NCBI GenBank assembly: GCA_965240325.2
Contig: OZ251248.1
Coordinates: 744,001 to 808,000 of the forward strand
Direction: 5' to 3'
Length of the DNA stretch: 64,000 nt
From: Rebecca billardiae RCC1528
Lineage: Eukaryota; Protista; Haptophyta
This document shows, piece after piece, positions 3 through 42,649 of this stretch (position 1 is the stretch's first letter; the number at the start of each line of letters is the position of its first letter). The translations under genes were made by a program, and so were the position numbers. The notes beneath the pieces are model-generated. The model worked only from the letters and a program-made list of their open reading frames with translations. It made no database searches and was not told the DNA's origin.

Positions 3-101
3 GTGACAACCGACGACTGCGCCACCTGCCTCAGCCTCGACTCGAGCCACCCGGAGCTCTTGGCGCACTACCTCGAGGCGGACTCGATTGGCGGCGTGTA
101 G
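3..101 (+). CDS. Possible terminal exon of a gene starting upstream of the window
   Basis: AG at 1-2 is followed by an open frame with coding-like codon usage (VTTDDCATCLSLDSSHPELLAHYLEADSIGGV*) ending TAG at 99-101, just before the satellite. Confidence 0.35.
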   Translation: MTTDDCATCLSLDSSHPELLAHYLEADSIGGV

Positions 102-149
102 CTCAGCGTGCGCAGCCGCGCAGCCGCCTTGGTGGAGGCGGTGGGCGCG

Positions 150-3100
150 CGGCACACGGCGGCGGTGCACGGCGTTGACGGCAGTCGCGCGCGCGCGGAG
201 TCGATGGCGGAGGCTGCCTCGGCCGAGTGCGCTCGCGTGCACCGCCGCCGTCGCCGAGCAAGCGTGTCCGCTCGATGTCGCGCGCCGCGGCCGGGCGCGC
301 GGCCGCGGCCGCGGTCGCGTGCGGCGCCGCGCCGTGCCGCGCCGCCGCCTCGCCGGAAGCGGCGGGCGCGCGGCGCGCGGCGGCGGCACGCGGCGATGAC
401 GGCAGTCGCGCGCGCGTGGAGTCGATGGCGAAGGCTGCCTCGGCCGAGTGCGCTCGCGTGCACCGCCGCCGCCGCCGAGCACACGTGTCAGCTCGATGCC
501 GCACGCCGCGGCTGGGCGCGCGGCCGCGGCCGCGGCCGCGTGCGGCCAACGCGGCCGCGCGGCCGCGCCGCGCCGCGCCGCCGCCTCGCCGAAGGCGGCG
601 GGCGCGCGGCGCGCGGCGGCGGCACGCGGGGATGACGGCAGTCGCGCGCGCGTGGAGTCGATGGCGGAGACTGCATCGGCCGAGTGCGCTCGCGTGCACC
701 GCCGCCGCCGCCGAGCGCGCGTGTCAGCTCGATGCCGCGCGCCGCGGCCGGGCGCGCGGCCGCCCCCGCGGCCGCGTGCGGCGCCGCGCCGCGCCGCGCC
801 GCCGCCTCGCCGAAGGCGGCGGGCGCGCGGCGCGCGGCGGCGGCACGCGGCGATGACGGCAGTCGCGCGCGCGTGGAGTCGATGGCGGAGACTGCATCGG
901 CCGAGTGCGCTCGCGTGCACCGCCGCCGCCGCCGAGCACGCGTGTCAACTCGATGCCGCGCGCCGCGGCCGGGCGCGCGGCCGCGGCCGCGGCCGCGTGC
1001 GGCGCCGCGCCGCGCCGCGCCGCCGCCTCGCCGGGGGCGGCGGGCGCGCGGCGCGCGGCGGCGGCACGCGGCGATGACGGCAGTCGCGCGCGCGTGGAGT
1101 CGATGGCGAAGGCTGCCTCGGCCGAGTGCGCTCGCGTGCACCGCCGCCGCCGCCGAGCACACGTGTCAGCTCGATGCCGCGCGCCGCGGCTGGGCGCGCG
1201 GCCGCGGCCGCGGCCGCGTGCGGCCAACGCGGCCGCGCGGCCGCGCCGCGCCGCGCCGCCGCCTCGCCGAAGGCGGCGGGCGCGCGGCGCGCGGCGGCGG
1301 CACGCGGCGATGACGGCAGTCGCGCGCGGGTGGAGTCGATGGCGGAGACTGCATCGGCCGAGTGCGCTCGCGTGCACCGCCGCCGCCGCCGAGCACGCGT
1401 GTCAACTCGATGCCGCGCGCCGCGGCCGGGCGCGCGGCCGCCCCCGCGGCCGCGTGCGGCGCCGCGCCGCGCCGCGCCGCCGCCTCGCCGGGGGCGGCGG
1501 GCGCGCGGCGCGCGGCGGCGGCACGCGGCGATGACGGCAGTCGCGCGCGCGTGGAGTCGATGGCAAAGGCTGCCTCGGCCGAGTGCGCTCGCGTGCACCG
1601 CCGCCGCCGCCGAGCACGCGTGTCAACTCGATGCCGCGCGCCGCGGCCGGGCGCGCGGCCGCCCCCGCGGCCGCGTGCGGCGCCGCGCCGCGCCGCGCCG
1701 CCGCCTCGCCGGGGGCGGCGGGCGCGCGGCGCGCGGCGGCGGCACGCGGCGATGACGGCAGTCGCGCGCGCGTGGAGTCGATGGCGAAGGCTGCCTCGGC
1801 CGAGTGCGCTCGCGTGCACCGCCGCCGCCGCCGAGCACACGTGTCAGCTCGATGCCGCGCGCCGCGGCTGGGTGCGCGGCCGCGGCCGCGGCCGCGTGCG
1901 GCCAACGCGGCCGCGCGGCCGCGCCGCGCCGCGCCGCCGCCTCGCCGAAGGCGGCGGGCGCGCGGCGCGCGGCGGCGGCACGCGGCGATGACGGCAGTCG
2001 CGCGTGGGTGGAGTCGATGGCGGAGACTGCATCGGCCGAGTGCGCTCGCGTGCACCGCCGCCGCCGCCGAGCACGCGTGTCAACTCGATGCCGCGCGCCG
2101 CGGCCGGGCGCGCGGCCGCGGCCGCGGCCGCGTGCGGCGCCGCGCCGCGCCGCGCCGCCGCCTCGCCGGGGGCGGCGGGCGCGCGGCGCGCGGCGGCGGC
2201 ACGCGGCGATGACGGCAGTCGCGCGCGCGTGGAGTCGATGGCGGAGACTGCATCGGCCGAGTGCGCTCGCGTGCACCGCCGCCGCCGCCGAGCGCGCGTG
2301 TCAGCTCGATGCCGCGCGCCGCGGCCGGGCGCGCGGCCGCGGCCGCGGCCGCGTGCGGCGCCGCGCCGCGCCGCGCCGCCGCCTCGCCGGGGGCGGCGGG
2401 CGCGCGGCGCGCGGCGGCGGCACGCGGCGATGACGGCAGTCGTGCGCGCGTGGAGTCGATGGCGGAGACTGCATCGGCCGAGTGCGCTCGCGTGCACCGC
2501 CGCCGCCGCCGAGCGCGCGTGTCAGCTCGATGCCGCGCGCCGCGGCCGGGCGCGCGGCCGCGGCCGCGGCCGCGTGCGGCGCCGCGCCGCGCCGCGCCGC
2601 CGCCTCGCCGGGGGCGGCGGGCGCGCGGCGCGCGGCGGCGGCACGCGGCGATGACGGCAGTCGCGCGCGCGTGGAGTCGATGGCGGAGACTGCCTCGGCC
2701 GAGTGCGCTCGCGTGCACCGCCGCCGCCGCCGAGCACGCGTGTCAGCTCGATGCCGCGCGCCGCGGGCGGGCGCGCGGCCGCGGCCGCGGCCGCGTGCGG
2801 CCAACGCGGCCGCGCGGCCGCGCCGCGCCGCGCCGCCTCCTCGCCGGAAGTGGCGGGCGCGCGGCGCGCGGCGGCGGCACGCGGCGATGACGGCAGTCCC
2901 GCGCGGCCGCGCCCCGCCGCGCCGCCTCCTCGCCGAAGGCGGCGGGCGCGCGGCGCGCGGCGGCGGCACGCGGCGATGACGGCAGTCCCGCGCGCGTGGA
3001 GTTGATGGCGGAGACTGCCTCGGCCGAGTGCGCTCGCGCGCGCCGCCGTCGAGCACGCGTGTTAGCTCGATGCCGCGGCCATGCGCCCATGCGCGGCCGC

Positions 3101-3300
3101 CCCCGCGCGCGGCCAACACGGCCGCGCCGCCGCACCGCCGCGCCGCGGCCTCGGCGAAGGCGGCAGGCGCGCAGCGCGGCGCGTGGCGGTGGCGCGTGTC
3201 GACTGTGGCAGACTGACGCGTAGAGACGATGGTGGAGGTGGCCCCGGCTGAGCGTGCTCGCGCGCACCGCTGCCTCTGCCGAGGCGTCGGTGCGCACGCA
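150..3300. repeat. GC-rich tandem satellite, ~13 units of 221 or 236 bp, degenerating after ~2900
   Basis: The motif GCCGAGTGCGCTCGCGTGCACCGCCGCCG recurs; equivalent positions are 227, 448, 684, 905, 1126, 1362, 1583, 1804, 2040, 2261, 2482, 2703 (spacings 221,236,221,221,236,221,221,236,221,221,221). Long units carry a 15-bp insert containing CCAACGCGG. Confidence 0.97.
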
Positions 3301-5148
3301 TGCGCAGTCGCGGCCTCGGCCGCTTGCGCACGCGCGCTCGGCCGCGGCGCACTGCATTGAGCTGACATGCGCGCTCGGCGGCGGTGGCGGTGCCTGCGAG
3401 CTTAGCGTCGACGTCGTGCCCGCGCGTCCCACTCGCCTCGCGCTCACGCCACCGACATGATGTCTGCTGCGTGGGCGTGGCACATTGGCCGAGGCTAAGG
3501 TGGAATCGCGCGGCGCGGCGCGGCGCGGCGCGGCGCGGCGGCGCTGCTGCTGAGCACTCGATGGCGGGCGCGGGCGCTCTGGATGCGCAGCCCAGCGGCC
3601 GCGCCTGATGCCATGCTCGGCGGCACACAGGCCGAGGCTGTGGAATCGCGCGGCGCGGCGCGGCGCGGCGGCGCCGCTGTAGGCGGCGCCGTAGTCCGCG
3701 TAGCTACCGTAGTGGTGACCCGCCACGCGGCCACCCGGGAGTCGCGGGCCCAAGTGCGCCTGACTCTGAGTCGTAGGCTACATACGCTTATCACGCGGCG
3801 GGCCACCCCGCAGGATGACAGCAGGATCCGCGTTACGCCGCGGGCCGAGCTACTTATCGGTGGCGGATGCGTGGGATGATGCCATGATCGACGCGACGGA
3901 TTGTCATTGATGACCACGACTCATCGCAGTATGATACAGTCGTCATACTAATACTGCTTCATTACTTGGCCCGCTTAGCTGCTTTAGCTTACGTACCGCG
4001 TACGTAATTCAGCTTGCAGTAGGCTGCTGGCTCGGCTCCCGCTGATCATTCAGCATACTGAGAATAATATTGCGGCGGCCCGACGATCAGCGCCTATCAG
4101 TCTGGCGCGGCGGAATAATATCATATCAGCCGCACAGACTCTGCGCTGTAGTACGTACGTCGCGCGTATATATACGCGGTGACGAGCAGGCAATGTCTCA
4201 ACTGGCACATCAGTCTCACTGTCTCCGACAGACCACGGTCATTACAGGCTTCGGTCCGAACAGCCGGCGAGTGCCATCAATCAGTCGGCCAGTCACTGGC
4301 CAGTCCCGAGTCCGGGCTCGCGGTCTCTTCAGTGTAAGTGTGACGGCGCTCAGGGTTCATCATCGTCAGCATCGTCATCATCAGGCCATATCTCACTCAT
4401 CAGCTTCAGCGCGGCCGCTGTGGCCCGCCTGTCCGGGCCGTGCCAGTCAGCCATCGCAAGTTTGGCTTGGGCCCGGCGGTGGCGGCGCCTGCAGGCGGCT
4501 CCGACGGCAGTTAGGCACTTAGGCCGGCAGCGTGCCCGGCCTGAGTGGCGGCACGCCACTGGTTGACGCGGTCATCACGCCGTGAGTCGGCCGCGCAGGC
4601 AGCGGGCGGGGCTGGCATGGACGTTGCCACTGCCTTTCGGGCTCACGCTGTGCGCGACCGTTCAGTGCCGAAGTGGCGCCGCCGCAGGACAGCGCCGGCA
4701 TACGTGCAGCGCTCGAAGCTTGTCTGGTCATCACGAGCGCGTGACAGTGCGGCGTGCTGCCACGAACGAGGCATCGGTCTAGACAGATCTCATTCAAGGG
4801 CGCGCGCCGGCGCTTGCCGCCTGTGCATCGACGTCGATCTCTATCCACGCCAGCGCCGTGGTGCAGGCGTCGTGCGTGACTGCACGGCGTTGGTTGTGGC
4901 AAAGAGCTGCTCATTACAGAGGCTTGTGGCTAGGCGCGACGCCGCTCGAGCAGCCTCATCGCCGCCATTATGAAGCTCGACGATAGATGGCGGCGCCGGC
5001 CGGGCGCCATCATGACGGCGGTACTACTATGGATTCATTTGCTCCGGAACCAGACGGAGCTCTCGTCCGGTCGAAGGAAACGGAATTCAAGCTAAACGAA
5101 CAGCTGTCCGTTGCACGGAGGCCTTCCGGCCGTGAACGGCCCGGCGAG

Positions 5149-5492
5149 GTCGCCACGACGTCGTGGCGACCTCGCTGAGGTCGCCACGACGTCGTGGCGA
5201 CATCCGGATGTCGCCACGACGTCGCCACGATCTCGCTGCGACATTCAATGTCGCCACGAGATCGTGGCGACGTCGTGGCGACATCGGACAGTGTCGCCAC
5301 GATCTCGTGGCGACATCCGGATGTCGCCACGAGATCGTGGCGATTTCGTGGCGACATCCGGATGTCGCCACGAGATCGTGGCGAAGTCGCCACGATCTCG
5401 TGGCGACGGCTGCGAGGTCGCTACGAGGTCGCCACGAAAGCTTAGACTCCAACACTGATTTCTTTTTATTCTCGCAGCGACCTCGTGGCGAC
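5149..5492. repeat. Array of 22-bp palindromes GTCGCCACGA-NN-TCGTGGCGAC and half sites with 7-10 bp spacers
   Basis: About 7-8 full palindromes plus half sites. Spacers include CTCGCTGAG, ATCCGGAT (x3), ATTCAAT and ATCGGACAGT. Confidence 0.9.
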
Positions 5493-11651: not shown

Positions 11652-13981
11652 GTCCCGCTCACAGTCAGCTCCGCCGCGATCTGATAGACTGCAGGGGCCT
11701 GATGAATCCGCGGCCGCCTGACATCTGACGTTCGGATGAATAATAACCGTGCTGCTCGTCGTCGTCGACTTACGCGATGAGTTCCTACTACTTATCTACT
11801 ACCTTGACGTGCCCATCGCCAAGGAGCAGGCTTTGTTCGATGATGACGTGCCCGACCAACGCCAAGGAGCAGGCTCGGTGCTCGATGATGCGACTGCCAA
11901 TGCTCGGGCTTGCTGGCTGCCGCGGGCGAGGGCGCCGAGCAGCATCGCACCGACGGACACGCACGGCTGTATGCTGTATGGAGAGCTCTGTGGAACTTGG
12001 AGCCCGGTTTGGCGCCAACGCGGCGGGCGTACACGGGCCACGGGGCCCGCGGCAGCGGGAAGCGCGCCGCGCGCGGGTGCGGTCGATGACGTTACGGTCC
12101 GCCGGTCCGGACGCCTCTCGCCAGCCGCGGACACGCACAGCGCATCCTCCTCGCACGCTGCTATATTCATCCGGTGCCAAGCGGTGGTTGTGCTGCCGAA
12201 ACCGGCTAGAGTTCCACGGCTGGTCATGGTTCGGCTTGCGACCTCGCCGCTGATGGTGCTTCCGTGCTTGCAAGAAGGTATGCTGTTTAGCAAGAATAAA
12301 GGTACTCTGCGCTTGTCGACGCCCTCTGAAGGTGACTCGGGGTGGATGAGGGGCAGTGGAATGCAGTGCGGGTCGGCATTGACTCTCACTCGTCCAGCGC
12401 GCATGCCACCAGTAGCGCGGATGTGGTGCGCGCACGGCCCGGTAATTGCGGTCGCGGCGTGTGTGTCTGGCCAAGGGAGGTGTCTGGCCCTGGTTGCGGA
12501 GGCACCAGCGGAAGGGCGTTACTCTGGTACAATACTGCTGTGCGACACTACTCTGAATATTATATATGGGTTGGCGCTGCGCGTCAACTTGGGCTGGAAA
12601 CCTGTTTCTGAAACGCATGATGGCACGCCGGGCCGGTAGCCCGAGCTCGGAATTCCGACGCTGCCAACGGCGCCACAGGGGCGCAGCGGCGGGGCTGACG
12701 ACGCGCGCGCGTGTGCACGTCTGACCACGGAGTGCGCGCTGCAATGACTGGCCCGTCCGCAGCACCACGCCCCGCGCTGTGAGTGAGAGTGTGGCCCGCG
12801 CCCAAGCGAGAACGAGGGCCGGGCGGCACTCCGCCGACCTCGCCGGCCGCCGACCAGCCCGCGGCCGCCTGCTGCAGCTCGTGGAACACGCAGTCGCGCG
12901 CTCGCGCGTGGAGGGCGGACCTGCGCGTATGCGCCCACCGGGCTTGCCGCTTCATCCGCTGGCACCGCAGTGCAGGTCGAGCCGTCCGCCGCCCACCGAG
13001 CCGGCGCCACGCCTCGCGCTCGTGCTCGGGCTGAGGCGGCGGCGTGTCGCCCGAGCCGGCGGGGTCGCGCGCGTGCGCGTGGTGGGCAGCCTCGCGCGTG
13101 CGCCCGCCGCGCGCCCCGCGTCTCTCGCTTGGCGCCGCACGCGAGCCGCTCGTCGCGCGACCGAACGAGACGTCAACGCAAGGGCGACCCTTGGAATGGC
13201 GTGGGCTCCCCGCCTTGTCGTCCTTCACGGGACGTCGTCGACGCGAGGCCGCGCGAGGTTGCTCCGATGCTCGTAGTCCAATGCAAGATGATACCCGCGT
13301 GCCGCTATCAGCGCGCCCTTTCGCTCGTGAATTGTCTAGCGAGAAAGTGACGGATCGTGCGAATGTGAAGTGTGAACTCGCGACACGACGAATGCGCCGA
13401 AAATCGCCGATGCGATTCGCGCGAATGCGAGTACGCAAAGCGCCGAACGACGAGCGGCTTTTGACCGAACGACGAGCGGCTTTTGTCCTATCGAGCGCGT
13501 AAGTGGGTACGCGAATTGCGCTTATGTGACCCGGTGGACGGGCCGGTGGTGAGCCGGGCGTCAAATAAAGGCCCGCGACGGGCTGGTCCCCAGCGTGAAG
13601 TCGTGCCTTTGTTCTCGTGGGTTTCCAGAATTAACGAGGTGGTATGCAACGGGCAATGTATACATATTGTACGCGTAACGAAAAGCAATAATGAACAGCC
13701 GATACGGTATAATCTACCACTCACGCAGAGATTCTCATCAGATTCAGCCCGCGAAAATATGTGGGTCGTACTCACCATAATGAACAGCCGATTCGGTATA
13801 ATCTACAACGAGAGATTCTCATAAGATTCACCACCTGTGCCAATATGCGGATAATCACCTCAAATTTTGGAACCACTCATCTACTCGGCAGCTCGGCGGG
13901 AAATCGGGGTGAATTTGGGCCTTGGTCGGAGGGCACCTCGGCTGATGGCGCCGTGGCGGCATTACCCTCTCCCCGCGACGT

Positions 13982-14606
13982 CGTAAGCCGCTGCGTGCGC
14001 GGAGGTGCGCGCCACGGCGGCGCCTGGCGGCGCTGCTGTAGGAGGCCACTGTGCAATCTCTCTGCTCGCGCGCTTCGCCCGTCGTCGCCGTTGCAGCGCC
14101 TGCGACCAGCACGCACGCGAGCGAGCGCCGCACTGGCCCAGCAGCCGGGGCAGTCTCAGCCGTCAGTGCGCATGTGCGTCGCGATCTGGTCGGCCCAGGG
14201 CGTGAGGCGCGTCCGGGCGAGGTAGGGCCACCATGGGCGTGCGCCACTCCGCCTCGACCTTGCGCCGGTGGGCATGTTGCGGGCGACCTTGCGAGGCCCG
14301 CGGCATTCCCACCGGCGCAACGGGTCGAGGCGGCGTGCCGCGCGCCCATGGTGGCCCTACCTCGCCCGCACCCGCCTCGCGCCCTGGGCCGACCAGATCG
14401 CGACGCACATGCACGGCTGAGACTGCCCCGACTGCCTGCCGGCAGTGCCGAGTGCGCCGCTCGGCTCGCGCATGCTGGTCGCAGGCGCGGAGACCGGGCG
14501 ACGACGAGCAATGCGCGAGAGGCAAAGAGGAGCGCAGTGGCTTCCTAGAGCAGTGCATCGGGACGCGCCGCCGTGGCGCGCACCTTCGCGCCCGCAGCGG
14601 CTCACG
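13982..14606. repeat. Imperfect long inverted repeat (foldback), ~300-bp arms, centre ~14290
   Basis: For example GCATGTGCGTCGCGATCTGGTCGGCCCAGGGCG at ~14170 pairs with CGCCCTGGGCCGACCAGATCGCGACGCACATGC at ~14380. Pairing continues outward with mismatches and indels. Confidence 0.92.
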
Positions 14607-15401
14607 CCGTGCGCGCCACAACCGCCCATCGACGGCGGCGGCGGCGGCGCTGCGTCGTGGGAGACTTGAAGAGTGATGAAGACCCAATGACTGTACGATA
14701 TTGACTATGTACTGTATCGTATTGTATTATGATACAAGAGTGCAACACCCATAGTACAATACCCAGCAAGCTCGAGCAGCAGAGAAGCAGAAGCGAAGGA
14801 CCACACACCAACTGCACAGATGTACAGCCTACAGGTGCTATGGCCTATTTCTGGACGGAAAATCCAAGTAGCTCTCACGTCCAGCCATGGCGGACTAGCC
14901 CGCCCACGATGCCACCACGCCAACCAGCGTGGAGTTAAAGGTAGGCACACGAAGTCTCATCGTCATCGGCCATCGCGTTGGTGAGCAACGTGCTCGACTT
15001 CGTCATAGCCCAGATCTGGGCACATGCCGTTTTCTGGACAAACCGTGGACGTGCGGTCGTGAAGCTGTGCGCGCATGTTGGTGGGCCAGGAATGCTTGAG
15101 ACCGGACAGGAAGGGCCGCAGTAGCTCGCTGGACTTACTTGACGACCTAGTCCAGGCATATACCACGCGTTCTCTGCTCCACTAGTCCATTCACCTGCGT
15201 TCGGTGCCTGGCACATGCTACGCGTTCTCACAAAGCACCCGCGTTGTCATGCAGCTATCTGATAGCTCAGCTCTGCACGCGATCAGTCTCATCAGCCGAC
15301 CATGTGCTAGATCACCAGTTCTGTGAGCCCACGCCCTCCTGCGACAGCGTCGCCACCCACTCCGGGGTAACCGTGCGCTGCTGCGCGCGGCCTGAAGCGG
15401 C

Positions 15402-15691
15402 GCGCCGTCGGCGTCGGCATGCCATGACGCCCCTGTGTCCGGATGCCGCTCGGCGCGGAGCACCGTGACCGGCCGTGACACACGAGACAGACGAGTACCC
15501 GAGCAGTCTCGTCCCGGCCGATCATCTATCAAAGACTAGGCGTGATGACACGCCTAGTCTTTGATAGATGATCGGCCGGGACGAGACTGCTCGGGTACTC
15601 GTCTGTCTCGTGTGTCACGGCCGGTCACGGTGCTCCGCGCCGAGCGGCATCCGGACACAGGGGCGTCATGGCATGCCGACGCCGACGGCGC
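15402..15691. repeat. Perfect palindrome, 143-bp arms with a 4-nt loop (ATGA, 15545-15548)
   Basis: 15402-15544 reads as the reverse complement of 15549-15691, with no mismatch seen by eye. Confidence 0.95.
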
Positions 15692-21442: not shown

Positions 21443-24400
21443 GAGGCCATTCCACCGAAATCAGCCGGCGGGTGGGGACCCCAGAAGCGCCTTCGGGTGG
21501 GGAGGTCCCCACCCGAGCGCGCACTCGGGTGGGGAGGGCGAGCTCCGCAGTGCGCGGCCGCCGGCGACGCGCACCGCGGTCGTCGCTCGAGTCTCCGCGG
21601 CGCGCGCGCGAGTCTGCGCGGCCCGCGCGCGCGTCCTACGGGCGCGCACGGCCAATCTGCCCTCGCGCGCCGCTGGCTGCGCGCCTCTCCGCCGCTCACG
21701 CCGCTCGCCAATGGCCCGCGACTGCGCGTCGGCACGTTTGTCCGCTGCGGCCGACCGCGAACGCGCACAGGCGGGCACAAGGAAGTCGGACGATGATTTG
21801 CTGTCGTGTTGTGCGCGGACCATGTGTATGCGCTTCGCCCAGCCGCGCGCGTCGGTCGCGCACGCCGACCAAGGCGAGCTCGAGCGCGCGCGCAAGCTGG
21901 CGCTCGCGCGTTTTGGACCCATGAAGGTGCCAGCGACTCGAGCGCGCCCAAGCGTCGGTAGAGCGCGCGCCGCGCTCGCGCGAGGAGCTGTGTGGTCGCA
22001 GATCGCCCGCACGCTTGCGCCCTGGGCGATCCGCGCCCTCGCATGCGCCAGCCGCGCGAGGCAGCGGCGCGTCGCACATGCCGGCCGCGCGAGCGCGGCG
22101 CGCGCCAAGCCTGCGTGCAGCGGCCGCAGCTGGTGTGCCTCTGAGCCTCAGCTGTGTGCTAGCCTGCGCGAGGATGCGGACGGCGCGCAGGGCGTACACT
22201 TGAACGGGTAGGTTGTGTACCAGCGCGGTGGCGCACCTAAGCCTCTTCTGATCCTCGCACGTGCTTCGTCTTTGGATAGCACATCAGCAGAATCGTCACG
22301 ACAGACTCCCCAAGTCCGCGCTGCGTTGCTGTCGCCAGGTGAGGGTTGCGCAACCAGTCGCCACACGACACCACCATCGTCTCCGGCTGTCATGCCGAGG
22401 ACGCGTACAGGCCGGTACTGACTCGGGCGTTCAGCGCGACGCGTACTCACCTCGAATGGATTCGCTGCGTGCGCAGTTCGCAATTAACGCCAGCGATAGC
22501 CGAAGGAGTGCTGCTCTGCACAGCATGGATGCAGACGCGAGCGTGGGCGAGGAGCAACTTGGGCGCTAGGCGGCAACGACTGCGTGTTGATTGATCGACT
22601 CATGCTGCGATGACGACTCAGTGGCAAGGGCCCTCAGCCGTTGATGTATGGCAGGCGCCGTGACGTCGGATCAGCATGGAGCACGGGGCTTGACGTCTGA
22701 CGCGTCTGAGCAGCTTTCTGTCGTGGTCGTGATTGAACCGCACTCGGTGCGGGCTGCACGGCGCATGCCATCGCAGCGGACCGGCCTCGGCCGCGCGGCC
22801 GCCTGCCCTGGGATCGGTCGGCGGGCCCGTCGGCGCCCGCCCGCTGACTACGGCGAGACTCTGGATGAGACCGAGTCCGATGGCCGTGGTGGCTCGCGGC
22901 GACGCGCGCGCGCGGCCCACTTGGCCTGTCGCCGCCGCGGCCTGCGGTGGCGCGCAAGGCTCAGGTCACACGGGCTGCGCTGGGCCGCGCAGCGCCGCCG
23001 CGCTTTTATCAGCAGCATCGGCCTGCGGCCGCCGCGGTGGCTGGCCGCCTGACGGCCGGTGCTCGCAGGCCGCAGCCCACGCATCCTCGTGGCAGTCTGC
23101 ACGCAGAGGATGGTAGACCGGCTAACGGCGGCCTCGGCGGCTGCGAGCAGCCCCTTCATCTTCGGTTGACGGCGTGTCGGCGGCGAAGAGGTGGCACGGG
23201 CGGCCACGGTCGTGTCGACTCAGTGCCTCTGACGCCGCGCCTTTGTCGTCCCAGTCAGTGCCAGGCTGCCGCCGTGGACGACTTGGATGCCAATGCGGTT
23301 GCCTTGACGAGCGCGTGCGGTCGTTGCGCCTGAAGTGTCTCAGACAGAGCTGATGGCTATGCCGGACGAACTTGCCGCCGCGGAGCCATCGGCGGTGCCT
23401 GACGCACCGCCATCGCCGCACCGATGCGCATTCGCCGCGCCAGCGCCACGCAGTCCGGACTCCTGCGCCAACTCCCAGCTGCTGCGGTCCGTGCTCGGGA
23501 ACACGGCGCAGCTGGACACACTCTGCGCGCACAGCCTTCTTGCGCGCTTACCAGCCAGAGTGAGTGGCACAGCACGTGGCCAATTCGGGAGTGGCGTGCG
23601 TCTGAGGCGGCGCTGTGTGACAATGTGCTCGCTGTGAACGGCGCTGTCGACCACAGCGCAGGCGGCCACGATGCAACGAGGTGTGGCCGCGACGCGTGCG
23701 TACAATGTACTGCCGAAACTAGCGTACCTGCGCCAATATTCAAGTGACAATGCCCGCGTCTGACACGCTCTTGGTCCCGCGAGCATGCTGTCCCCTTGTC
23801 TCAGCCTATGACTCAGACTGACTAGCACCGTTGTCCAATGGCATCGAGTAGGCTACAGGTAGCAAGGCGCGCGCCGCGCTCGCGCGGCCGGCATGTGCGA
23901 CGCGCCGCTGCCTCGCGCGGCTGGCGCATGCGAGGGCGCGGATCGCCCAGGGCGCAAGCGTGCGGGCGATCTGCGACCACACAGCTCCTCGCGCGAGCGC
24001 GGCGCGCGCTCTACCGACGCTTGGGCGCGCTCGAGTCGCTGGCACCTTCATGGGTCCAAAACGCGCGAGCGCCAGCTTGCGCGCGCGCTCGAGCTCGCCT
24101 TGGTCGGCGTGCGCGACCGACGCGCGCGGCTGGGCGAAGCGCATACACATGGTCCGCGCACAACACGACAGCAAATCATCGTCCGACTTCCTTGTGCCCG
24201 CCTGTGCGCGTTCGCGGTCGGCCGCAGCGGACAAACGTGCCGACGCGCAGTCGCGGGCCATTGGCGAGCGGCGTGAGCGGCGGAGAGGCGCGCAGCCAGC
24301 GGCGCGCGAGGGCAGATTGGCCGTGCGCGCCCGTAGGACGCGCGCGCGGGCCGCGCAGACTCGCGCGCGCGCCGCGGAGACTCGAGCGACGACCGCGGTG

Positions 24401-24529
24401 CGCGTCGCCGGCGGCCGCGCACTGCGGAGCTCGCCCTCCCCACCCGAGTGCGCGCTCGGGTGGGGACCTCCCCACCCGAAGGCGCTTCTGGGGTCCCCAC
24501 CCGCCGGCTGATTTCGGTGGAATGGCCTC
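21443..24529. mobile_element. Non-autonomous element with 664-bp TIRs (GAGGCCATT... ends) and candidate 5-bp TSD CGCCC
   Basis: 21443-22106 is the reverse complement of 23866-24529 (identical translations in the ORF track). CGCCC lies at 21438-21442 and 24530-24534. Confidence 0.88.
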
Positions 24530-36998: not shown

Positions 36999-39900
36999 TC
37001 ACGACGCCTCCAGCGTGCGCCTGCGCCGGGCGAAGGCCGAGCCGTGCCCCGCGGCCGCGGCCGAGGCGCGCGCGGCGGCCGGCCCGCCGCGGCCGCGCTC
37101 TCCGCCGACAGCTCGCGGCGCGCCACCCTCCTGCAGACTGGCGCCGCCCTTGCGCGCCGCCGCCGCCGCCGCCGCCCCCGGCCGCGGCTGCTGTGACCAC
37201 GCGTGCTGTGCGGGCGGTGGTGCGTGCTGGGCGCGTGCCCCGCTCGCCATCGAGTCGCGAGGCCCAACCGGGCGGCGCTCGGCGGACGCCTCCGAGCTGA
37301 GGAGTGCCGTGCCCTGCCCGCTGCCGCCGTCCGCGGCCGCAACCTCCGCTGGCGCAGTGCCTGGTCGCAGCTGCATCCAGGCAGGCGGCGGCAGCCGCGC
37401 CGTCGGGCGCTCCGCTGCGCGCTCGGCGAGATGCGGCGGGTCCCCGCGGCGCGGCGAGAGCCCGGTGTACAGGTTTCCCGGGAGCGTCACCGCCGAGCGC
37501 GCACGGCCGGGCCCGTAGGGCGGTGGGTATCGGGCTGAGGCCAGCAGCGCACTGTTCGGTCGCGAGTCGTCAGCCGCGCCGCCGCCGCCGCCGCCGCCGC
37601 CGGGGAAGTCAGCTGCGTGCGGTGTGGGCGCTCGGGGGAAGTGCGCCGTCGCGCCCAGCGGCGGCGGCGGCGGCGAAGCACCGCCCTGCGGCTGCTGCTG
37701 CCGCATGAACTGCTGCAGCGTCTGCCCCGGCACCAGGGCGCGCTCGCCGCGCGCGCGCGCCTCCACCGAGCCGCGCGTCGGCCGCGCGGGCGGCTGCAGC
37801 GCTGCCGGCGTCGCTGGCCTGGGCCCCTTGGTGCTGTGGCCACCTTCCAGAACGGTCGGGTCGTGCAGCAGGTTGAGCAGCGCGGGGTCGAGCACGGGCG
37901 CGCCGCACGCCAGGCAGCGCACGCCGTCCTCGCCCTCGTCGCCCGCCGCTGTCGGCGGCGCGCCGCCGCCGACCCCGAGGCCGTCCGCGCCGCCGCCGCC
38001 GCCGCCGCCGCCGCCACGCCCAGCGAGCGCGTGCGCCGTGCCTGAGAGCTTTGCGTGTGCGCTTGCGGCTGTGCCCGCGCCCGGCCGGCCAGGAACGGGC
38101 GGCGCGGTGCCCGCGCGCTGCTGCAGCAGCGTGCTCGAGCCGCCGCCGAGGAAGCGGTGCAGGTGGAACGCGACAGACTGCAGCTTGAGCTGCGCGTCGT
38201 ACGCCGAGCGCTCCGCCTCCTGCTTCTCCTCGACGCCCCTCTCGATCGCCCGGTGGCACTCTGTCAGCCTGAGGCCCTGCGTGCGCAGCGACTTTTGGAG
38301 GCCGCTGATCCGCGCCGTGTCGCGCGGGTGGCGCCACTTGCTCACCGCGTGGTCCACGCGGTGCATGCTCGTCGCGGCCGGCGGCTCGTGCAGCCGCTCG
38401 CGCCGCGCGAGCCGCAGCTGGTGCGTCACGAAGGCCACCTCGTGAGAGATGTCGTCCGATCGCTCGCCGAGCGGCACCGGCGTCGACGAGTGCGGTACGC
38501 CGGCCGAGGGCTCTGTGAGGTAGTGGCGCAGCGGCGGCGGCTGGTGCGCGCCGCCGCCCTCGCCGTACTCCGAGCCCGCCGTCACGGACGCGAGCTCGGA
38601 GATCCGATCTCCTGCCTCCGCCCGCGAGATTGCATCTCCCGCCTCCGCCCGCGAGATTGCATCTCCCGCCTCGGCGCCCTCGGCTGATGGGTCAGCTGCG
38701 GGCGCCGCGGGCGCAGACTCGTCGGCCGCGAGCGGCGCAGAGGCGGGTGCAGCGCCTGCGCCGGCGCCCTCGCCATCCACGCCGCGCGGCGCCGCCGTGC
38801 CGGGCGCCGCCGCCACGCCGCCCGCGCCAGCCGCGGGCGCGGCGCCAGCTGCCGGCGGCGCAGGCGTCGCGGCGGCGGCGGGCGGCGCCGCGCCGTCCGC
38901 GGCGCCTGATGGCGCGCCGGCGCCGGCGCCGGCGCCGCTCGGGGCTGCGCGCTGCTCTGACGCCACACTCGACGACTGGCGGCGCGGCGCCGGCGGCGGC
39001 GCGGCGCCACCGGGCTGCCACTCGCTCGCGTGCGAGCCCGCAGTGCCGCCGGCGCCTCCGCCGGCAGCGGCGCCGGCGGCGCCGCCGCCATGGCTACCGC
39101 CGCCCACGCTCAATGCCGCCTCCGCCTCGGCCGCCGCAACGTGTGCCGCCAGCGTGGCCGCGCCCGCCACGCCGCTCGGCGCGTAGCCCACGCCGCCTGC
39201 CTGCGCCTCCGCCTGCGCCGCCGCCTGCGCCGCCGCCTCCGCCTCCGCCGCCGCACCCGCGCCCAGCTCCGCAGGCATGAACCCGGGCCGACACAGCCAC
39301 TCGACACGCCTCACAACGGCGGCGCACAGGTCGCCGTTCCTCTGCGCCACCTTGCGGGTGCTGAGCAGCTCGGACGCGAGCTCCTGCGCGCGCGCGGGCG
39401 TGCGCGGGGTGCAGGGCGGGGCGCGCGGCCGCGTGCTCGGGGGGTGAGGGCACGCCCAGCGGGGCGCGAGTAGAGGGCCGCCGCGGCCGGCCACGGCACT
39501 GCGGCACGGCGCGTCCGTCGCGCGCGGGGGCGCGCGCGCACGCGCGGGGGCGCGCGGGCGCGCGCGCAGCGCCGGCTGATGGATGGCTGCGCGGCGGCGG
39601 CGAGCGGCGCGCACCAGCTCGACGCGCAGCGCGCGCTGCCGCTCGGCGCCGAGCTCGAGCGCGCTCGCCTCGCGCTGCTCGCGCAGCTGCACCACCAGCT
39701 CGGCCCTCGCCATGTCCCGCTCATCCGCCAGCCTGGTCAGCTCGCTTTCAAACTCGGCGCGGACGAGCTCGGTGCCCTGGGCCAGCCGGTGCTCGGTCTC
39801 GGCGAGCTTCTTGACCATGCGGAGCCTCTCGGCGTACCACTCGGCGTCGGCGTCGGCGATCGAGCCGGCGACCACGCCGAGCTCGGCCTCGAGCCGCTCG

Positions 39901-41521
39901 CCCCACGCGATCGACAGCGCGAGCGCGCCGCTCTGCGCCGACGCGGCGGAGCGCTCAGCCACCAGGTCGTCCGACTTGGCGTTGAGCAGCTTCTTCAGCC
40001 GCTCGTTGTCGGCGCGCACGGAGTGGAGCAGGGTGCGCGCCTCGTCGCGGTCGTGCACCAGCACGGCCACCTCCTTCGAGTGCTGCTGCGTCAGCGCGTG
40101 CTCGCGCTCGCGCAGCTTCTTGCGCAGCTCCTCGTCGCGCTTCCGCTTCAATTCCTCGAGCTCCTTCGCCTTAATCTGGAGCCGCGAGATCTCGGCGGCC
40201 TGGTTGGTCATCCGCCCCTCGTACTCGGCGCGCACGGTGGCGTGCTTCTCGAGGAGCTCGTCGTGCTCGGCGCGCAGCACCGCGAGCCGCCCCTCCGTCT
40301 CGCCCAGCGTCGAGCGCAGCTGCTCCGTGTGTCGCGTGTGCTTGAGCTCGGTCGCGCGCACCGCCTCGCGGCCCGCGACCTCGAGCGCGATCACTCGGTT
40401 TTCAAACTCGGTGTGCGTCGACTCGGAGACCTTCTCGGTGCGGCTGCGCGCGTGGGTCGTCGCCGCGCGGTACTCGTCGAGCTTGAGCTTCACGCGCGCC
40501 AGCTCCGTCGCCAGGCTGCGCTGCGACTCCTTCGCTCGGTGTGCCTCGGCCTCGGCGCTCGCAACCCGCGCAGACGCATCCTCCTTGGCTGCGGTCGCCT
40601 TCGCGCGCTGCAGCGTCACGTCCTTCTGCAGCGAGACGATCTGCTCGTTGAGCCCGGCGACGGTCATGTCGTACCGCCGCTCCATCGCCGCCAGCTTCAG
40701 GTCGAGCTCCGACTGCAGCGCCGCGCCCTCGTTCCGCGATTGCACGGCCGCGGCCGAGCGCGCCTGCGCGCGCGCCGGCACAAGAGCAGGCCGCGTCGGC
40801 GTCGGCGCCAGCTCGCGTGAGCGACGCGCGGCGCGGTGCCGCGCCGAGGGCGCGCGACGCGTGGTGCCGCTGCGCGCGCGCACACGCCGCGCGCGCGCGC
40901 ACGCACCTGCTCGACGCGGCTGGTCGCCGTCGAGCGCGCGGCCGTGTCGCGCCCGCGCGCCTGTGCGATGCTGTCGACGTAAAGCTCGCGCGCGAGCGCG
41001 TGGACGGAGCCGATGATGGTGGCCTGCGCGGAGGACCAGTCCTTCTGCGTCTGCACGAACGCGTCGAGCGCCTGCGAGAAGCTCGCGTACACCGTGTGCA
41101 GCAGCCCCTGCAGCGCGCCGTTCAGCGCCTCGTGCTCGGCGCGCAGCTGCGGCTTCAGCTGCTCGTGCACGCCCGGGTTGGAGAAGTAGGTCTCGAGGCG
41201 CGCGGCCTCGAGCTCGGTCTGCAGCTCGAGGAGTCGCTCGCCCAGGTACCGCCCGAGCCCCGCGGTGAGCGCCTCGTGCCGCTTCGCCACGTCGTCGATC
41301 TTGGATGCGAACTGCACCTCGCCGTGCACCTCGGCCTTGCTCTGCAGCGGGCGCTCGGCGCCGGCGTTGGCGATGAGGTTCTCGAGGTCGTGGCGCGTGA
41401 GGCGGAGGCGCGCGCGCTCAGCGTTCGCCTCCTGCTCGATCGAGATCCGCCGCGCGCGCCGCGAGAGCTCCGCGGCCGTGAGCTTCGCCTTGCCGGGGGA
41501 GGCGCCCTCAGCCTCCTCCAT
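36999..41521 (-). CDS. Large coiled-coil protein with low-complexity C-terminal half; exons ~41521-40907, 40763-39615, 39383-36999
   Basis: Long E/L/R/A heptad-rich frames are joined by GTGCG...GCAG introns. Contains a 9-aa repeat AEAGDAISR. The 3' end is uncertain. Confidence 0.75.
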
Positions 41522-41725
41522 GGCGTAACTCACTGCTTGCTTTGTTCGTTACTCGTGCCTGTGGACTTCAGTCATCGGTTACTGTGAAATGTAAGTCGCC
41601 GTCAACCCGCGAAAGGTCGATCGATGTAAAAGGTTCCCACGCGCTCGACTGCCGGCCCGCCCCGCCCGCCCCGGCCGGGCCGGAGGCGACCCACACCACT
41701 CCGCAGCGCCGGCCAAACGAACGAC

Positions 41726-42649
41726 TCAGACAGGCCCCGCGAGGGGCTGGGGACGGTACGCATCGAACGTCGCGGCCGTAAAGCCATCGAGCGCCGCGCG
41801 CGCGCCGACGGCAGCCTCGGTGAACGGCGCCTCGCGCGCGCCGTACCGACGGCGCGTCGGCTCGTCGCAGCACGCGCACACGACATACGCCCAATCGGCT
41901 TCGTCAAACGGCTCGAGGCTGACCGCGCCCGGCTCGGCGCTGGCGAGGAGCCGCGTTCCCTCGCGCGCGCTCTGCAGCATGGCGCGGGCACGCGCCGCAG
42001 CTTCAGGGCGCGACTCGCCACCGGGCGGCGCGCCCGGCCCGCCGCGCCTGCCCGCGCGGCCGCCGCCGCCCCTGCCGCCGCCGCCAGCGCCGCCCCACCG
42101 GCGGCGGCCGAGCTGCACGAGCTCGTCGTCGCTCATGTGGCCCGCATCCCAGTGCGTCCGGTAGGGGTAGGCCACCTTGATCCGGAGCCTCCCTACCCCG
42201 CACGGCCGCAGCTCACGCCGGTGCCACTCGAGCAGGCCGAGCGTGCACGACAGTCGCTCCTCGGACGAGGAGTGGTGGCACGGCTGCAGGTTGAGCCGAA
42301 GCACGACCTCGAGCGGCCCGAGGCCGGCTTCGTGCGCGGCGCGTAGCGCGGCGGTGAAGCGCGCGTCTCGCATGAGCGCGCCCTCCGCGTGCTCGCGCTG
42401 CGACGTGTTCGTGTGCAGCGCGGCGTGCGCCTCGGAGCCGTCCGCGCACACGACCGTTGCGACGAGTGCCGTCGTCTTCCCGCGGCAGCACTCGCCGCCC
42501 GCGCGTAGGCACACGGGGCGCTCGATCCCGGCCTCGGGCGTGGCCTTGACGTGGTAGAAAGCCTCGCAGAAGTCCTCCGCGCCAAGCTGCGCCACTGGCA
42601 GGGGCGGCTTCAAAACAATGCTGCTCTCCTGGGCCGCAGCAGCGGCCAT
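41726..42649 (-). CDS. AID/APOBEC-like zinc-dependent cytidine deaminase
   Basis: FCEAFYH, HTN..REHAE, VVLRLNLQPCHHSSSEERLSC, LRIKVAYPY, AREGTRLL and LEPFDEADW appear in the order expected for the AID/APOBEC fold. The gene is intronless. Confidence 0.8.
   Translation of the reverse strand: MAAAAAQESSIVLKPPLPVAQLGAEDFCEAFYHVKATPEAGIERPVCLRAGGECCRGKTTALVATVVCADGSEAHAALHTNTSQREHAEGALMRDARFTAALRAAHEAGLGPLEVVLRLNLQPCHHSSSEERLSCTLGLLEWHRRELRPCGVGRLRIKVAYPYRTHWDAGHMSDDELVQLGRRRWGGAGGGGRGGGGRAGRRGGPGAPPGGESRPEAAARARAMLQSAREGTRLLASAEPGAVSLEPFDEADWAYVVCACCDEPTRRRYGAREAPFTEAAVGARAALDGFTAATFDAYRPQPLAGPV

Follow-up and report, generated by a model that had tools for sequence, protein, structure and literature searches.

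The window analysed here, a 64-kb stretch of DNA, carries on its minus strand a complete coding sequence for a deaminase (41726..42649), which begins with an ATG at 42649 and comprises a single open reading frame (ORF; 41729-42649) of 307 amino acids with an uninterrupted translation, followed by a stop codon at 41726-41728. In DNA that is 72% GC, with long ORFs present in all six frames, one must consider that such a sequence could be a chance ORF or a decaying pseudogene rather than a functional gene. This reading can be taken as already refuted for practical purposes, its probability being vanishingly small: Firstly, the ORF runs its full length without a stop or frameshift, its GC content at the three codon positions (0.76/0.60/0.88) has a coding-type pattern with an excess at the third, and GC on either side falls to 55-64%. 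Secondly, a contig of the independent Logan assembly matches the locus at 100% identity across 6,371 bp. Thirdly, the motifs and functional residues are kept across 161 representative homologues (clusters at 50% identity), and the protein yields a confident single-domain model. The gene is thereby confirmed as real, intact and intronless, encoding a zinc deaminase with an AID/APOBEC (AAD) fold; the absence of introns, already proposed in the preliminary description, holds because one continuous ORF encodes the whole fold. A tblastn search for paralogues found none inside the 64-kb window, and a synteny comparison with the locus of one homologue (L001) revealed nothing in common except the gene itself.

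Every motif listed in the preliminary description was recovered where it had been placed within the 307-residue ORF (all coordinates that follow are on the minus strand). Helix 1 and a long loop 1 (residues 24-60; 42470..42580) hold the N-terminal motif F27-x3-F31-Y32-H33 and the extra cysteine cluster C47LRAGGEC54C55, and include a second Cys/His set, C28, H33, C47 and C55, conserved in 76/77, 76/78, 77/79 and 77/78 members of the family, respectively. These four residues are predicted from sequence to form an accessory zinc-chelating site, an insert of this kind having been described for the cnidaria-algae-APOBEC4 clade (PMC3239186, PMC5889660). At the end of strand 2 (residues 73-80 in the model) and the start of loop 3 lies N81 (42407..42409), an Asn in 71/77 members and the counterpart of N57 of A3A, for which a base-contacting role is known (PMC5889660). 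The catalytic H87-A88-E89 (42383..42391) provides a zinc ligand and the proton-shuttle Glu at the start of helix 2 (residues 88-107 in the model); position 87 is H or C, and position 89 is E, in 76/77 members each. The two remaining zinc ligands are supplied by loop 5 and the start of helix 3 in QPCHHSSSEERLSC, that is, P123-C124-x10-C135 (42245..42283), conserved in 80/81, 83/84 and 82/83 members, with an insert between the cysteines of 10 residues in the window protein and 10-30 across all members. The catalytic zinc site, H87, C124 and C135 with E89 as proton shuttle, is therefore intact, and ~99% of members keep the [H/C]xE and PC-x10-C residues together with the second Cys/His set. Conservation across the alignment further marks the stretch in which strand 4 ends and loop 7 opens with aromatic residues (A160YPYRTHW167; 42149..42172), where Y163 is found in 85/89 members, R164 in 76/90 (with Lys in a further 11) and W167 in 85/90. 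Finally, helix 4, strand 5, helix 5 with D252-W253 and helix 6 with R284, D288 and F290 (41762..42010) make up the C-terminal half of the protein and contain the elements R229EG..LL235 and F248DEADW253; according to the model, these residues are part of the APOBEC fold and not a separate domain, and they are well conserved (G231 in 90/91, D252 in 82/92, W253 in 78/92 and R284 in 92/93 members, with F/L/M at position 248 in 77/93).

Searches of Pfam, NCBIfam and PDB sequences with the window protein returned no direct match beyond a weak one to nSTAND_NTPase5, and a Pfam scan of its ten closest relatives gave no match either. A P-loop reading of the nSTAND_NTPase5 match (E 0.064, over a 'GKTT' segment) was rejected: in the deaminase fold this segment leads into strand 1, and relatives do not conserve GxxxxGK[ST]. 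Homology to known deaminases is instead transitive: the window protein matches one member of its family (P0057) with a phmmer E-value of 2.7e-13, and this member scores 42 bits against APOBEC_N (cut-off 25) and 34.4 bits against NAD1 (cut-off 27). Short-loop members of the family exceed the Pfam thresholds for APOBEC models and, among 92 members, matches were found to APOBEC4 (PF18775; 34 members), APOBEC_N (33), NAD1 (29) and SNAD4 (28), with PF18774 (APOBEC4_like) matched by only one (E 1.2e-4). A profile search for named relatives returned no informative names, and the close family members P0009, P0010 and P0018 come from marine metagenomes other than the window's sample. The family as a whole is patchy and highly divergent, and its loop lengths vary widely.

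The fold also bears on where the protein belongs. AlphaFold predicts one domain of APOBEC topology (pLDDT 89.3, pTM 0.88), in the order alpha1-beta1-beta2-alpha2-beta3-alpha3-beta4-alpha4-beta5-alpha5-alpha6, with strand 4 at residues 152-159, helix 4 (214-236) between it and strand 5 (243-247), and two extra C-terminal helices thereafter (250-270 and 278-296). The best 50 Foldseek matches are all AID/APOBEC proteins (TM by target 0.6-0.73), and the whole fold superposes on APOBEC3G-NTD (6p3x), APOBEC3H (5w3v), AID (5w0r), APOBEC1 (6x91) and APOBEC2 (2nyt) with an rmsd of 2.8-3.2 A, and the zinc ligands, the Asn of loop 3 and the aromatic residue of loop 7 follow one another in the same order, albeit at a sequence identity of only 15-18%. 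Six AAD representatives give VIA-align Z scores spanning 13.1-17.0, amongst them A3G (17.0; 183 residues aligned at 2.8 A), A3H (16.9; 185/186), AID (16.6), APOBEC1 (15.0) and APOBEC2 (13.1), and the AAD structures align over 170-185 residues, covering residues 15-303 of the model. These comparisons bear directly on the alternative that the protein is a free-nucleotide or tRNA deaminase of the CDA, dCMP deaminase or TadA/ADAT type, sharing no more than the HxE...PC...C signature. Such a reading could draw on the profile of the core, which gave marginal TadA matches against PDB sequences (E 0.065, over the HAE..PC segment), and on dCMP_cyt_deam_1, weakly matched by 6/92 members; the TadA suggestion was, however, superseded by the fold searches, and dCMP-deaminase matches in BFVD were likewise weak. 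Where AADs reach a Z of 13-17, the other deaminases do not exceed 6.9 (CDADC1 6.9, the best; dCMP deaminase 6.4; TadA 4.6), with ~100 residues aligned; the model has a helix 4 before strand 5 and two more helices after it, and loop 7 bears an aromatic residue, an AAD hallmark, at a place where TadA has a small one (PMC5889660). A nucleotide or tRNA deaminase is thus highly improbable, being largely refuted already on the strength of the model, and the structure that the preliminary description had named as counting against it, one resembling CDA, dCMP or tRNA deaminases, is not what the fold searches returned.

Within the AADs, the closest described group is that of the "novel AID/APOBEC-like" proteins of C. 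elegans (ZK287.1), Nematostella, Micromonas and Emiliania (Iyer et al. 2011), later the cnidaria-algae-APOBEC4 clade (Krishnan et al. 2018) and Pfam PF18774 APOBEC4_like. The window protein shares with this clade an insert in loop 5 between the catalytic cysteines, an extended loop joining strand 4 to helix 4, a large hydrophobic residue (F248) ending strand 5, two further helices at the C-terminus, the first of which bears a D-aromatic pair (D252-W253), and its occurrence in algae. The four near-invariant Cys/His of helix 1 and loop 1 may correspond to the zinc-chelating insert that the clade has at the N-terminus or in loop 1. In the Atlas, the full-length fold is matched best by clusters of APOBEC4/APOBEC4_like and by one cnidarian cluster of APOBEC4_like; the nearest unnamed Atlas clusters are mostly from Haptophyta. 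Unlike the clade, neither the window protein nor its ten closest relatives are recognised by PF18774 or other Pfam models, CAE takes the place of HAE in most sister sequences, and loop 7 is enlarged by an insert specific to the window protein's own clade. Nor does the family conserve two further features of the 2011 group, HxEE in helix 2 and a Glu in strand 5: position 90 is G in the window protein and variable elsewhere (E14, D12, G10, Q10), as is position 246 (R25, D16, E10). Both carried little weight in the 2011 description, and the 2018 account does not name them among the defining features.

Vertebrate APOBEC4 (PF18775) offers a further comparison, as the family's commonest Pfam match and a protein with a long loop-5 region, an additional insert close to loop 1 that binds metal, and an Atlas fold similar to that of the window protein (TM 0.55 over 198 residues). 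Its sequence similarity to the window protein nevertheless lies below detection, and loop 3 supplies the fourth of its accessory ligands, whereas all four Cys/His of the window protein precede strand 1. In the vertebrate enzymes of solved structure, the cysteines are spaced as PC-x2-4-C, loop 1 is short and lacks a Cys/His cluster, and loop 7 is short as well; the window protein differs in each respect. On balance, transitive profile homology, an AAD-specific fold match and the published clade features bear out the initial assignment to an APOBEC4-like AID/APOBEC family whose zinc cysteines are set apart by an insert, and we hold both the AAD fold and membership of the APOBEC4-like group to be very likely.

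The most distinctive part of the protein is loop 7, which spans 63 residues compared with 15-29 in most members of the family. It is interrupted by an insert of 46 residues (45-114 across a clade of 15 members) that has a single origin and includes a conserved helix. Its first part, residues 168-185 (D-A-G-H-M-S-D-D-E-L-V-Q-L-G-R-R-R-W; 42095..42148), is a conserved module with a predicted helix at 174-182, common to both long-loop subclades and missing in short-loop relatives. The second, residues 186-213 (42011..42094), is a variable, disordered tail rich in Gly, Arg and Pro (pLDDT below 50 across residues 190-204); its G+R fraction reaches 0.31-0.58 in the window protein's subclade only, the sister subclade having no conserved Gly/Arg tail. 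The RGG-like insert first proposed after strand 4 requires some revision: a Gly/Arg stretch does lie there (residues 189-203; 42041-42085), but it contains only two true RGG triplets and is the variable end of a longer insert, in which the initial ~18 residues are the conserved part. The position of the stretch in loop 7, on which the specificity of APOBECs rests, makes it plausible that it binds nucleic acid.

Taken together, the best explanation, which we regard as probable, is a single-domain, zinc-dependent AAD of the APOBEC4-like group that would deaminate cytosine in polynucleotides, most likely in defence. Such an enzyme would convert cytosine to uracil in single-stranded DNA and/or RNA, with the enlarged loops 1, 5 and 7 making the substrate groove, and the loop-7 insert, with its short conserved helix and flexible tail of Gly and Arg, would contribute electrostatic binding of nucleic acid or the recruitment of partners. 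In solved APOBECs, the loop-3 Asn (or a small polar residue in its stead) and the loop-7 aromatic residues limit the pocket to pyrimidine size (PMC5889660), and the window protein has both at the places expected relative to strands 2 and 4. It lacks a hydrophobic N-terminus or signal peptide, and should thus act intracellularly, in the nucleus or cytoplasm.

Residues tilt the balance modestly towards catalytic activity on polynucleotide cytosine, yet conservation of residues does not prove catalysis, because APOBEC4 and APOBEC2 keep theirs and have no assigned enzymatic activity. The window protein could similarly retain the AAD fold and zinc site and mainly bind nucleic acid or partner proteins, for example through its RGG-like loop, while deaminating little or not at all. 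Its closest named relatives by both profile and fold are indeed APOBEC4 and APOBEC4_like, and its loop 7 is interrupted by the 46-residue insert. The His of HxE, moreover, is reported to be absolutely conserved in active AADs (PMC5889660); the window protein has it, but this base-stacking residue is replaced by Cys in sister sequences, with CAE in 7/9 representatives of the window protein's own subclade. Conversely, E89, P123/C124, C135, N81 and Y163/W167 are near-completely conserved across the 161 diverged representatives, which would most simply reflect selection for catalysis. AADs of invertebrates have also been found to be active: the sea-urchin and brachiopod proteins SpAIDL and LaAIDL are mutators in E. 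coli, as assayed in ung- strains by rpoB mutation and KanR reversion, with only some paralogues active (Liu et al. 2018). These are the only functional precedent for non-vertebrate AADs such as the window protein, from which they differ in belonging to another AAD clade, none of them having its loop-5 or loop-7 inserts. Weighing both sides, a protein that chiefly binds is an unlikely outcome, albeit one of appreciable weight, and an active deaminase is preferred.

An active deaminase would most likely serve to restrict viruses or mobile elements by mutating them, or alternatively to edit RNA at specific sites; defence itself is a tentative assignment, to which we give somewhat less than an even chance. 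A housekeeping C-to-U editor of specific sites in mRNA, rRNA or tRNA would be in keeping with the RGG/RG stretch of the loop-7 tail, stretches of this type being typical of RNA-binding proteins, and APOBEC1 provides a precedent for RNA editing by an AAD. The gene is also present as a single copy in the window, with no local expansion, and orthologue-like relatives at ~50% identity are present in several marine samples. Against such an editor, the sister subclade does without a conserved Gly/Arg tail, and the 50%-identity clusters form the patchy, divergent family of widely varying loop lengths set out above; in AADs, patchiness and divergence go with conflict-driven evolution (PMC5889660). Housekeeping editing accordingly appears quite improbable, and defence is retained as the preferred role. 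The suggestion that nearby hairpin elements serve as substrates found no support: no deamination footprint could be interpreted in a self-BLAST of the window's repeats (2,455 transitions, 3,581 transversions), where a single GC-rich tandem array, together with GC-rich alignments of low identity, dominates the signal and renders the test uninformative.

A more speculative proposition, and an improbable one as it stands, is that the 15 members with a long loop 7 may form an algal AAD subtype not described before, in which the specificity loop gained a helical module and an RGG-type tail and with them a new mode of substrate recognition, and that short-loop members may be carried by AT-rich giant viruses. 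Candidate targets of the long loop would include structured or G-rich RNA or DNA, or it may recruit the enzyme to ribonucleoprotein bodies. With regard to viruses, scans of IMG/VR with single proteins (P0159, P0001 and the helicase of locus L009) gave no matches, a search of BFVD gave no APOBEC-like match, and the Atlas clusters closest to P0159 bear no viral label. Should giant viruses carry short-loop members, exchange between algal hosts and their viruses, rather than transfer from cnidarians to algae, would be implied.

In vertebrates, AID/APOBEC enzymes act as the mutators that diversify antibodies and restrict retroviruses. Algal relatives were predicted as early as 2011 (Iyer et al.), and the present prediction, well supported, falls within a known group and is not a surprise: the APOBEC4-like group was already known from sea anemones and some algae, and what appears new is the large loop-7 insert and the invisibility of its bearers to standard domain databases. 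Standard annotation misses the long-loop clade wholly, and such genes are therefore probably under-counted in algal genomes. The locus provides a complete, intronless and easily cloned example of 307 amino acids with an intact active site. As loops 1, 5 and 7 line the substrate groove of solved APOBECs, their enlargement here makes an unusual preference for sequence or structure possible; if the enzyme is active with such a preference, it would be of interest both for algal antiviral immunity and for the engineering of base editors, and if the long-loop reading is true, the family would be a source of compact new base-editor domains.

The deaminase gene occupies the minus strand of the window as a compact, intronless frame of uninterrupted translation, from an ATG at 42649 to a stop codon at 41726-41728, and encodes a protein of 307 aa that lacks a signal-peptide-like N-terminus. 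Translation of this frame recovers all of the motifs listed in the preliminary description where it had placed them: HAE at residues 87-89 (42383-42391, minus strand), QPC-x10-C (P123, C124, C135), the N-terminal F27-x3-FYH33, the Cys cluster C47LRAGGECC55, AYPYRTHW (residues 160-167), REG..LL (residues 229-235), FDEADW (residues 248-253) and a Gly/Arg run (residues 189-203). GC content at the first, second and third codon positions is 0.76, 0.60 and 0.88, as is typical of protein-coding sequence where the genome is GC-rich; on either flank GC falls to 55-64%. In an independent assembly of a public run, one contig matches the gene and both its neighbours at 100% identity over 6,371 bp. The upstream neighbour encodes a cyclic-nucleotide-binding-domain protein on the same strand. 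Directly downstream and on the same strand lies a region (36999-41533, minus) that begins ~190 bp past the stop codon of the deaminase. Its two overlapping ORFs, of 278 and 1,294 aa, have no Pfam match and may be one large gene.

The predicted fold identifies the product. The full-length model is a single domain (pLDDT 89.3, pTM 0.88) with a helix at 24-32, strands at 61-67 and 73-80, a helix at 88-107, a strand at 113-119, a helix at 135-150, a strand at 152-159, a long loop, a helix at 214-236, a strand at 243-247 and helices at 250-270 and 278-296. This modelled topology is that of the helix-4 division with two extra helices, as in AID/APOBEC enzymes; a separate ‘C-terminal domain’ suggested by phmmer matches was rejected, as the model places that region in the second half of the same fold. 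When the full-length model was compared with 48,161 PDB representatives using VIA-align, the matches included APOBEC3G (Z 17.0; 183 residues, 2.8 Å), APOBEC3H (Z 16.9; 185/186 residues), AID (Z 16.6), APOBEC1 (15.0), APOBEC2 (13.1) and an NMR structure of the A3G N-terminal domain (10.8), whereas deaminases outside the family scored 6.9 (CDADC1), 6.4 (dCMP deaminase) and 4.6 (TadA). Foldseek agreed, with TM by target of 0.6-0.73. When residues 20-176, the core, were modelled alone (pLDDT 88.9), the top 50 Foldseek matches were AID/APOBEC structures without exception, but a Foldseek-independent ranking gave only a slight separation of APOBECs (Z 7.6-8.4) from other deaminases (Z ≤ 7.0). VIA-align and Foldseek thus favour APOBECs over a CDA, dCMP or tRNA deaminase, an identity largely ruled out by the drop to Z ≤ 6.9, and the original assignment to the AID/APOBEC family is right.

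The protein has no significant match in Pfam, NCBIfam or PDB sequences, and nor do its ten closest relatives in Pfam. A word-indexed search yielded four relatives at ~50% identity; exhaustive phmmer searching of 1.84 billion cluster representatives yielded 161 at E ≤ 1e-3, 69 of them at E ≤ 1e-10. Across an alignment of 94 of the 161, the putative catalytic residues are nearly invariant (position 87: H in 65/77 and C in 11/77; E89 76/77; P123 80/81; C124 83/84; C135 82/83), and a second set of Cys and His residues is conserved to the same degree (C28 76/77, H33 76/78, C47 77/79, C55 77/78). N81 (71/77), Y163 (85/89), W167 (85/90), G231, D252-W253 and R284 are likewise conserved. Scanned singly against Pfam, 92 members matched APOBEC4 (34), APOBEC_N (33), NAD1 (29) and SNAD4 (28), some above curated thresholds; only six matched the general dCMP_cyt_deam_1 model and only one touched PF18774 (APOBEC4_like). 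One of those above threshold, P0057, scores 42 bits against APOBEC_N (cut-off 25) and 34.4 bits against NAD1 (cut-off 27), and its phmmer match to the window protein has an E-value of 2.7e-13.

Within the AID/APOBEC-like deaminases (AADs), a ‘novel’ group was described from nematodes, Nematostella, Micromonas and Emiliania (Iyer et al. 2011, PMC3239186), with a CxxC-motif insert, a longer strand-4/helix-4 loop, a large hydrophobic residue closing strand 5, two additional helices bearing a D-aromatic pair and, in Nematostella and algal proteins, an N-terminal zinc-chelating domain. Krishnan et al. 2018 (PMC5889660) later joined it to APOBEC4 in a single cnidaria-algae-APOBEC4 clade, on the basis of a metal-binding insert in loop 1, a loop-5 insert between the catalytic cysteines, and loops 1 and 7 of variable length. 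The family described here has these features, the metal-binding insert in loop 1 being predicted from the conserved Cys/His set. Two minor descriptors from 2011, HxEE and a strand-5 Glu, are not conserved. In a fold search of the ESM Atlas, the best full-length matches included an APOBEC4/APOBEC4_like cluster (TM 0.64 over 232 residues), a cnidarian APOBEC4_like cluster (0.62) and vertebrate APOBEC4 (0.55), along with two further clusters, one of nematode CRC-domain proteins and one mostly haptophyte. The window protein very likely belongs to this clade. An AAD gene in an alga will not surprise specialists; this one adds a Pfam-invisible member to a group whose algal representatives have been predicted since 2011.

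According to PMC5889660, active AADs invariably have His at the first zinc ligand. The window protein keeps it, as does its sister P0002, whereas CAE replaces HAE in seven of the nine representatives of their Gly/Arg-rich subclade, which is unusual among AID/APOBEC-like enzymes (alignment A4, residue-87 column; P0004, P0005, P0008-P0014). An independent instance of this substitution is seen in each of P0038 and P0044. Loop-5 spacing in the window protein, at 10 residues, is the family minimum (range 10-30). Loop 7, counted from W167 to G231, is bimodal: most members have 15-29 residues, and a subset has 45-114. When the core domain is placed in a maximum-likelihood tree, that subset coincides exactly with a single clade of 15 (support 98/93). 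This clade-specific elaboration is shared by the Gly/Arg-rich subclade (9 representatives, 100/93) and a second without such richness (6 representatives, 100/99). Its first part, common to both, is a conserved module of ~18 residues (D-x-x-H-M-S-acidic-acidic-acidic-L-x-x-L-G-R/A-R-x-W; predicted helix 174-182), and the tail that follows varies between members, lacks order in the model (pLDDT <50 at residues 190-204) and is rich in Gly and Arg only in the window's subclade. ‘RGG-like’ was a fair description of this tail, with just two RGG triplets, and its composition may partly reflect codon bias in GC-rich DNA. Because loop 7 sets target-sequence preference in APOBEC3 enzymes (PMC5889660), it is reasonable to suppose that the insert helps to bind substrate.

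Close relatives occur in several marine metagenomes beside eukaryote-type genes, and in the tree, GARP-rich and FYMINK-rich sources contribute intermixed members. P0002, the closest homologue, lies on contigs of 1.1-1.8 kb (L003-L008; 72% GC) that a single study yielded in nine runs. Most of these contigs share a start base ~130 nt upstream of the ATG that could be a transcript 5' end. Two short-loop members, P0159 and P0161, lie on gene-dense, very AT-rich metagenome contigs of 17-23% GC (L009:6781-7551; L010:2646-3416; L011:6001-6807; L012:3520-4326). ORFans are numerous on these contigs, which also encode an F-box protein, an RNase H/Cauli_VI protein and a UvrD-type helicase of 1,196 aa; the Atlas clusters closest to the helicase are mainly Nucleocytoviricota. 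Part of the family may therefore be carried by giant viruses, but the contigs showed no capsid or polymerase hallmark gene, and searches of IMG/VR and BFVD found nothing.

The hairpin elements proposed earlier as plausible substrates, three palindromic stretches at 13974-14615 (80% identity over 672 bp), 15402-15691 (98.6% over 290 bp) and 5149-5407 (80% over 270 bp), have no support in that role: nothing connects the deaminase gene to nearby hairpin or TIR elements, and the window's own repeats carry no interpretable mutational footprint. An inverted-repeat pair of 664 bp (21443-22106 and 23866-24529) is 100% identical, so neither decay by mutation nor editing is evident in this element. A long tandem array at 90-3400 (~80% GC, register ~220-230 bp) has copies 86-95% identical to each other and weak self-complementarity.

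The zinc site of the window protein is intact and its pyrimidine-pocket residues are present. The protein is predicted to deaminate C to U in single-stranded polynucleotides and may serve in defence. Its closest precedents for function point both ways: AADs of sea urchin and brachiopod act as mutators in ung⁻ E. coli, but no activity has been assigned to APOBEC2 or APOBEC4.
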